DNA from: Piromyces finnis finn
Lineage: Eukaryota; Fungi; Neocallimastigomycota
Assembly: GCA_002104945.1 (NCBI GenBank)
Contig: MCFH01000057.1
Location: 248,001 to 312,000 of the forward strand
DNA length: 64,000 nt
Direction: 5' to 3'
A program made the translations under genes and the position numbers. Every line of letters begins with the position of its first letter. The first letter of the stretch is position 1. Below are positions 29,901 through 32,900 of this stretch, one piece after another. The notes beneath the pieces are model-generated. The model worked only from the letters and a program-made list of their open reading frames with translations, was not told where the DNA came from and made no database searches.

Positions 29901-32900
29901 TAATTCCATACTATGATATTAAAAGTATTAAATAAATTTATTACTTTTTTTATAATATATACATATAATATCATAGGAAAAACTGAGATCTATGAATGCC
30001 GCATTACAAGATGAAATAGATAAAATGGAAGAAGAAAGATTATCATTAAAAGCCCAGCTTAGATTAAATGCTGTCGAGGTAATAATTGTGTTAATAATAA
30101 TATTATACTATTCATATTAATGTTTCTTTTTATTAATGATCTTCTTAATTATGAAATTTTAAATTATATAATAATAAAAAGAGAGGTGAACGCGCTCATA
30201 AATTAGGAATGTCAACAGATGATTTAATTGCTGTAGAAGATTTTTCAATGAAATTAAATGAAAAAAATAAAAATAAGAGTAAACTAGAAAAAGAATTAAA
30301 AAAGGCCGAAGAGAAAATTAAAGATATTGATTTTGAAAATAAAAAATTAAAAATTGAAATTAGAGGAAATGAAAAAGACATACATAACTTGAAAGTAATG
30401 GCAAATTATTTTCTATATTATAAAAAAAATCAGTTTTTTATATATTCAATAATTTATAATTTATGAATATTATTTAAAATTAAAGGATAAACTTGATCAA
30501 GCAGAAAAAGAAAAAGAAATATTAAAATCAGCCGCAAAAGAACTTTCAAATACATTTTTACACGGAAAAACTATAAATAATAATGATTATGTAATATACA
30601 CATTATAAATTGAAATATTCATATGTATTTTGGAGGGAAAATATATTAAAACATTTTATATATATTTGATAGATGGACTCAGTTCAGAAATTAATCAAAT
30701 TATTAGAAAGTCAATCAAAAAAAGATGTCAATAATAATATTAAGTCAGTTGGGTTATATGAAGAATTTACATCCATTAATATAGTAAATACAAAGAAATA
30801 TATTAAAATATATTAAAATATATTAAAATATATAATAATGTATAATATCTTTGTAATTATTTTATATCAATTAAGGAATTAAAAAGACAATTAGATGATA
30901 TCACTGAAAAATATTCTGAATTGTCTAAAGAAAAAGAAAGTTTTGATAAACAAATTGAAAATTTATTAATTGAAGTGGAAAAATGGAAAGTTAAAGCATT
31001 AGCACCTAGAAAAAGAACTATTGAAATTCCAGGTTAATATTATTATTAAGTTATAAATTATTATATCCATAATTTACATAAATTTTTATATTATAAACAA
31101 TTTCATAATAAATTAATCTATTTTATAAAATATTATTAAAAACAATATGAAAATAGAAAATTTACGATTTGGAGATATAACGGATATTTCATCAATAGTT
31201 GAACAATTAATTGAATGTATTCAAGATTGTGAAATAAAAACAAATGAGGTTAATAGTTTAAAAGAAGAAGTAAGCAAACATAAAGATATTGTATTTAAAC
31301 TAATTAGTCAACAAAGATTCCTATATCTAGATTATAATAAGCAAAAAAAAGAATATGAAGAAAAATTAGAGAAACTGAAATCTGAATTAGATGAGATGCT
31401 ATGCAAAAATGATATACAAAATATCCTTTTTATATTTCTAATATACTTATAGCTTTAATAATTAATTATTATTACTTATATGTAATTATAAATTATACCC
31501 TTAACTCTTTTTTTTATTATTTGAATTATATGATCTCACGTAATCATATTAAAGAACTGGAAAGTTTAAGTTCTCGTAGTGATAATGAATTACATAAGAA
31601 GGTAGTTGATCTTTCAAGAAATAATATGATGTTAAAAATTACTGAAAGTAACACAAATAGAAAATGTGACGCAATTATGGAACGTGAAAAGAATTTAAGA
31701 AAAGAAATGGGAGAAATAAAAGTAAACACTTTTATATTATAAATTTCAAAAGTAATCCCTAATAATTAAAAAATTATTATTAACTATATAACTATATATA
31801 TATATATATAATTGTTTTTTCAATAATTGAATAGAATAATAATCTTGAAATAGAAAAATACACAATCAATGCTCTTATCTATTACAAAGATTATATAAAT
31901 GATGCAAATTCAAAAATTGATTACTTATCTAATAAATTGCTTGGTATATGATTTTTTTAATAATTAAATTCACCTTTTTCACTTTATTAATATAAATTAT
32001 TTTTGCATAATTAATATAATTAATAAAATAAAGAGTCTGTACCAAAAAAAGATAATGATATTCTTCAATCCAAATTTGAAAAGTTAACTAACTCATATAA
32101 AAATTTATTACTTTGGAGAGATGATTGGCTAAAAAATAAAAAGAATATGCAAATTAATTTACAACAAGAAAAAGAAGTAAACAAGAAATTAAGTAGTGAT
32201 TTATATCAAGCAATTGAAGAAAAAGAAAAGGTAGATTTTAATTTTATTAATATTTAAATTTTATATATAATATGAACATATTAAATAAATAAAAATAAAT
32301 GACACATAATATTTTAATATAATTAATCAAGGCGAAATTAGTTGCAAATGGTGTAAATGAGGTATATTTTATTATATATTATATAGATAATAGAGTAGTT
32401 TTATTTAATATCTACAAAAATCCTTTGATAAATTATCAATAATAAAAATTTTTGATAAAATAAAAGTTACCACAAGAAGCTTTATTACTTACACAAATTG
32501 AAGCCTATAAAAATAAAATACAAGTTCTTGAAGATAAAATAATTAGAATGGAAACATCGGATACAAAAGTAAATAGATTCTTCTCTATAATTAGTAAAAG
32601 ATAATATATAATAAAACAATTTGATATATTAAACTCTTTTTTTATTATACAAAATTTTTATACTAAAATAAAGTTAAATGAAGATCTTCAAGGATTACAA
32701 GAAAAGTTTATGAATTCGATTGAAAGTGCTATAAAATTGGATGAAATGAATAAAATATCTGAAGTAGGAATTAATTAATTGTCTATGTCTATATTAATTA
32801 TAATAATATTAATATTTTTATCTTTTTTAAAAATAAATATATTTGGAAAATAATAGGAAGATAAAAAAGAAGAATTAAGCAAAGAAGAAAAAATAAATAA

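Follow-up and report, generated by a model that had tools for sequence, protein, structure and literature searches.

The available evidence indicates that positions 31421-31539 of the window, that is, of the whole 64,000-nt stretch of Piromyces finnis DNA analysed here, are very probably a genuine U12-type AT-AC intron, in phase 1, within a gut-fungal CEP290 gene. The intron is 119 nt long and lies on the plus strand. Its precise removal is supported by the join found in a transcript of a close relative and by RNA contigs of the organism itself, in which the intron is missing. The example is sound but ordinary, coming from a fungal class where minor introns are already described, and the modest interest that it holds rests on a distal branch box and on a lineage-restricted position.

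The CEP290 gene and the signals of its AT-AC intron

The host gene (26934-40306, plus strand) was modelled by dynamic programming over stop-free segments, which gives 55 exons and about 2360 aa. With exon 20 as query (31159-31419), chytrid proteins of 1444-2591 aa are recovered, and one of them, from Chytriomyces hyalinus, leads in turn to animal CEP290 carrying the coiled-coil domain PF16574. The same domain is matched by an orthologous transcript of a relative (L012, described below; 43.7 bits for a cut-off of 25), and both the N- and C-termini of the model match chytrid CEP290. Judged by these similarities, the assignment to CEP290 made in an earlier, sequence-only reading of this DNA is sound. 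The model comprises 54 introns (median length 103.5 nt). Fifty-three of these are GT-AG introns, with the donor consensus GTAA(A/T)T, and one is AT-AC, as expected from that reading, which had found a single non-GT-AG intron among the junctions that it checked. Two unusually long introns, at 34397-35004 (608 nt) and 28472-28709 (238 nt), are packed with long ATT/TAT-type simple repeats, whose translation in every frame is poly-Y, poly-L or poly-I. Downstream of CEP290, positions 42521-44710 hold one 729-aa open frame, which combines a long acidic repeat run of the NEINEDEINDD type with a conserved-looking C-terminal part.

Exon 20 (31157-31420, plus strand) ends in ...GAT ATA CAA A, in phase 1, and exon 21 (31540-31721, plus strand) starts with GT AAT CAT ... 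(S-NHIKELESL...). If read on, the upstream frame closes at a TAG codon (31450-31452), and no GT donor is present between about 31380 and this stop, in agreement with what had been claimed from the sequence. The intron begins with ATATCCTTT (31421-31429, plus strand), which matches the U12-type 5' splice site consensus /RTATCCTTT (PMC2846911) at nine positions out of nine. A branch-site box, CCCTTAACT, occupies positions 31498-31506 of the same strand, with A31503 or A31504 as the presumed branch nucleotide. It consists of CCCTTAAC (31498-31505) followed by T, so that eight of its nine positions match UCCUUAACU. The spacer from the box to the acceptor (31507-31536, plus strand) is pyrimidine-rich and contains neither AG nor AC. 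The 3' splice site CAC (31537-31539, plus strand) provides the first AC or AG past the branch box. The donor, the box and the CAC end named in the sequence-only reading are thus all present.

Taken alone, ATATCCTT is not enriched in the window (4 sites for 7.1 expected). Over the 64 kb and both strands, 31421 is the sole [AG]TATCC site to be followed within 150 nt by a CCTTAAC-type box, and it coincides with the point where the reading frame needs an intron. The [AG]TATCC sites at 12990, 24955, 53274, 53740 on the minus strand, among others, were rejected for want of a coding context or a branch box. CCTTAAC itself occurs 10 times on the two strands for 3.8 expected from shuffled sequences, none of which reached 10; among these sites, only that at 31499 belongs to a minor intron. 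Another copy of CCCTTAAC, at 39026, was rejected as a minor-intron signal. It is located in an ordinary GTAAAT...AG intron (38936-39044), 13 nt before the AG, and is therefore probably a U2-type branch site resembling the U12 box. A search with Rfam models at gathering thresholds found no snRNA in the window.

Protein, transcript and orthologue evidence for the junction

Removal of 31421-31539 joins ...CAA A to GT AAT... and creates a serine codon, giving ...CKNDIQ-S-NHIKELESL.... The joined peptide aligns as a single HSP, gap-free at the junction, with three chytrid CEP290s (E 1e-18 to 1e-24) and, likewise gap-free, with four animal CEP290s, those of a jellyfish, a sea anemone, a mussel and a lamprey (E 1e-15 to 1e-18). 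Separate alignments of the two exons to the chytrid proteins place the start of exon 21 exactly one codon past the end of exon 20. The predicted restoration of DIQ-S-NHIKE is thus borne out. These alignments bear on the idea that the true intron has conventional ends. Without the AT-AC option, the best GT-AG path runs from 31307 to 31554 and the best GC-AG path from 31398 to 31564, and both leave the frame open. They would, however, cost 43 and 16 residues, respectively, which gut fungi conserve and which line up collinearly with CEP290 of chytrids and animals, their donors (GTCAAC and GCTATG) are poor, and the L012 transcript keeps all the residues that they would delete. Conventional ends are accordingly extremely unlikely. 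The nearest GC-AG alternative considered in the earlier reading, from 31403 to 31554, does create a TAA at the join (CTA T|AA), as was stated there.

L012 is a JGI transcript contig of 4663 nt from a close relative, found by means of a degenerate pattern for the spliced junction. It is intron-free and matches exons 1-36 of the window model in order, with every intron gone; the two shortest exons, 24 and 31, were left out of the blastn alignment. Its identity with the exons of the metagenomic contig L002 is 92-95%. At the orthologous junction it reads ...ATACAAA|ATAATCAT..., in an open frame of 543 aa. The first base of exon 21 in L012 is A, so that AT starts both the intron and the exon, which leaves an ambiguity of 2 nt in the placement of the join. 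With G as this base in the window, the corresponding join would be unambiguous there; the predicted spliced junction is ...ATACAAA|GTAATCAT.... Elsewhere, L012 shows an in-frame TAA (L012:1349-1351) where the window has GAA, and a frameshift at about 2958-2980. Both are probably assembly errors or strain mixtures.

Three RNA assemblies of the organism itself contain 0.45, 0.45 and 0.42 of the words sampled from 30000-34000, which equals the fraction of 31-mers lying wholly within the model exons (0.441). The 15 words touching the intron or either of its borders (31391-31569) were found in the DNA run only and in none of the own-organism RNA assemblies, a test that shows the intron to be missing from the RNA contigs and says nothing on the join site. 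Protein searches found no RNA-derived protein of Piromyces finnis spanning the junction.

Orthologous genomic contigs were obtained from ENA (L005), from JGI metagenomes (L002-L004) and from Anaeromyces robustus (L006, GCA_002104895.1), in which the CEP290 orthologue (L006:5866-20011, MCFG01000059.1) is whole and collinear with the window model. All of them carry A|ATATCCTTT at the same codon position. The RNA contig L001, which comes from a more distantly related gut fungus and is 53% identical in exon 20, also has ATATCCTTT at this place and breaks off within the retained AT-AC intron. The donor is thus identical in five taxa (the window, L001, L002, L005 and L006). L001 also retains several ordinary introns (L001:841-1010 and 1128-1250) while other junctions are spliced, as in a partly processed transcript. 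The branch box of the orthologues is TCCTTAACT or TTCTTAACT, following the pattern (C/T)(C/T)CTTAACT, and the 7-mer CTTAACT is common to four genomic orthologues inside an otherwise diverged intron. The terminal AC is kept in L002, L005 and L006, directly before (G/A)TAATCATAT. The lengths of the orthologous introns range from 102 to 119 nt. The AT-AC intron is conserved across gut-fungal genera.

Identity is about 68%, with indels, in the intron interiors and 80-87% in the flanking exons. The exon differences fall mostly at third codon positions in the frame set by the AT-AC join; for exon 20, identity to the gut-fungal orthologues is 82-87%, with mismatches mainly at such positions. This bias looks like the pattern of purifying selection. 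The in-frame stop met at 31450 on read-through could in principle mean that there is no intron and that the gene is disabled or wrongly assembled. Given that the same structure recurs in four independent genomic assemblies, that the flanking exons differ mostly at third positions and that the RNA contigs are devoid of the 31421-31539 stretch, we regard this reading as hardly credible.

Branch distance and the route of splicing

The U12-type reading leads to the following scheme, drawn from the motifs and from the established steps of minor splicing (PMC3584512, PMC2846911). The U11/U12 di-snRNP would read ATATCCTTT and the CCCTTAACT box together, U6atac would then take over the donor from U11, and an A of the box (31503 or 31504) would form the lariat. 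The acceptor would be the first downstream AC, 35 nt off, beyond the pyrimidine-rich spacer, in which neither AG nor AC occurs. That this intron is handled by the minor spliceosome is suggested by its motifs and by the minor snRNAs and introns published for the class.

The geometry of the 3' end departs from what is usual. Between A31504 and the last intron base, 35 nt are counted in the window, in line with the earlier estimate of about 35 nt, and the distance is 34 nt in L005, 28 nt in L002 and 29 nt in L006. The optimum reported for U12 introns is 11-13 nt (PMC3584512), and this short-distance feature is absent from the CEP290 intron in all four genomic orthologues (28-35 nt). The distal branch does not exclude membership of the U12 class, because the 11-13 nt value describes efficiency in animals and is not a class definition. 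U12 introns are also said to lack a polypyrimidine tract (PMC3584512, PMC2846911). Pyrimidines make up 0.64-0.82 of the spacer in the four orthologues, counted over 27-34 nt that start just after ...AAC and include the terminal AC; for the tails of the U2-type introns in CEP290 the mean is 0.53. With a GC content of about 18% in the window, such T-richness is hard to interpret. The spacer is free of AG and AC ahead of the acceptor in three of the four orthologues. A hairpin shortening the path from branch to acceptor was considered and rejected, the fold energies being equal to those of shuffled sequence in all four. The distal box and the clean spacer are compatible with use of the first AC or AG downstream as acceptor, as far as can be judged from sequence.

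The long distance and the pyrimidine-rich spacer are U2-like 3' features (PMC3584512, PMC11347168). They would fit an AT-AC intron that the major (U2-type) spliceosome removes, or a mixed, 'hybrid' route (Olthof et al. 2024) with minor snRNPs at the donor and U2-type factors engaging the 3' region by way of the pyrimidine-rich spacer. However, the donor fits the U12 consensus in full (nine of nine) and does not resemble the GTAA(A/T)T donors seen in the gene's 53 other introns, the box agrees with UCCUUAACU at eight of nine positions and is conserved, and AT-AC ends belong with the minor class. In addition, the other introns of CEP290 are without a pyrimidine tract. A major or mixed route is therefore improbable, and the intron is better read as U12-type. 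It should be noted that some classifiers scan for the branch site only from -40 to -5 (PMC2846911); since CCCTTAACT spans -42 to -34, it would be clipped by this range.

Among the features of this intron, only the distal position of the branch box, kept in four genomic orthologues, could open something new. One may tentatively propose that gut-fungal minor introns routinely have some 30 nt or more between branch box and acceptor and use the first AC or AG beyond a pyrimidine-rich spacer; if true, this would mean a lineage-wide relaxing of the 11-13-nt rule, implying altered 3' splice-site selection. A separate proposal, prompted by the lack of an intron at this position in the chytrids and animals sampled, is that the CEP290 minor intron is a lineage-specific gain. 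We consider these proposals possible but rather doubtful.

Lineage distribution, annotation and known minor introns

Among the CEP290 genes sampled, those of four chytrids, two cnidarians and one mussel have no intron at the gut-fungal AT-AC position. The exon is uninterrupted there in Chytriomyces, Geranomyces, the species of P0004 and Synchytrium. The two cnidarians and the mussel have nothing but an ordinary GT-AG intron in phase 0, which lies past the AT-AC position by between six and seven codons. In a paper on ZCRB1, human CEP290 is set apart from the genes labelled as minor-intron-containing (PMC13216214). The intron may have been gained in gut fungi or lost elsewhere; gains of minor introns are regarded as very rare. 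Intron positions in CEP290 differ widely between chytrids and gut fungi. An intron found in all three chytrid genes to which one 221-aa query was aligned (L007, L008 and L009), about 45 codons upstream of the AT-AC position, is missing from the gut fungus.

The practical value of the finding lies in annotation. It had been anticipated that predictors restricted to GT-AG introns would break CEP290, and the public A. robustus model bears this out for a sister genus. Across the ~14-kb CEP290 locus of this species, the only gene model is BCR32DRAFT_242864 (231 aa, L006 10001-11100), which ends in ...CKNEIQNILFILNNNYNK, that is, it reads into the AT-AC intron; the rest of CEP290 is unannotated. With CEP290 fragmented or left unannotated, inventories of flagellar and transition-zone genes of gut fungi can be undercounted.

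Publications exist on minor introns and minor snRNAs of both Piromyces finnis and Neocallimastix californiae (PMC10639083, PMC11347168); the count of minor introns given for N. californiae by Olthof et al. (2024, PMC11347168) is 129. The novelty implied by the sequence-only reading was thus overstated, since a working minor spliceosome of gut fungi is already in the literature. Both surveys (Larue & Roy 2023, PMC10639083; Olthof et al. 2024, PMC11347168) were built on existing gene annotations, and their main texts make no mention of CEP290 or of an anomaly in branch distance.

Compared with the AT-AC U12 introns of animals and plants (/ATATCCTTT ... UCCUUAACU ... AC), the CEP290 intron has the same donor (9/9), nearly the same box (8/9) and the same AT-AC ends, and it is likewise conserved across genera. 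It differs from animal and plant U12 introns in that its branch box lies 28-35 nt from the acceptor instead of the optimal 11-13 nt, and in its pyrimidine-rich spacer. Its position is not shared with the animal and chytrid CEP290 genes sampled. With the published minor introns of Neocallimastigomycetes it has in common both the fungal class and the intron class. It resembles the introns that Olthof et al. (2024) call hybrid or minor-like in combining a minor-type donor with a long pyrimidine-rich 3' spacer; unlike them, it also has a strong minor branch box and a terminal AC. By these comparisons, the signals of the CEP290 intron are fully minor, and only its geometry is unusual.
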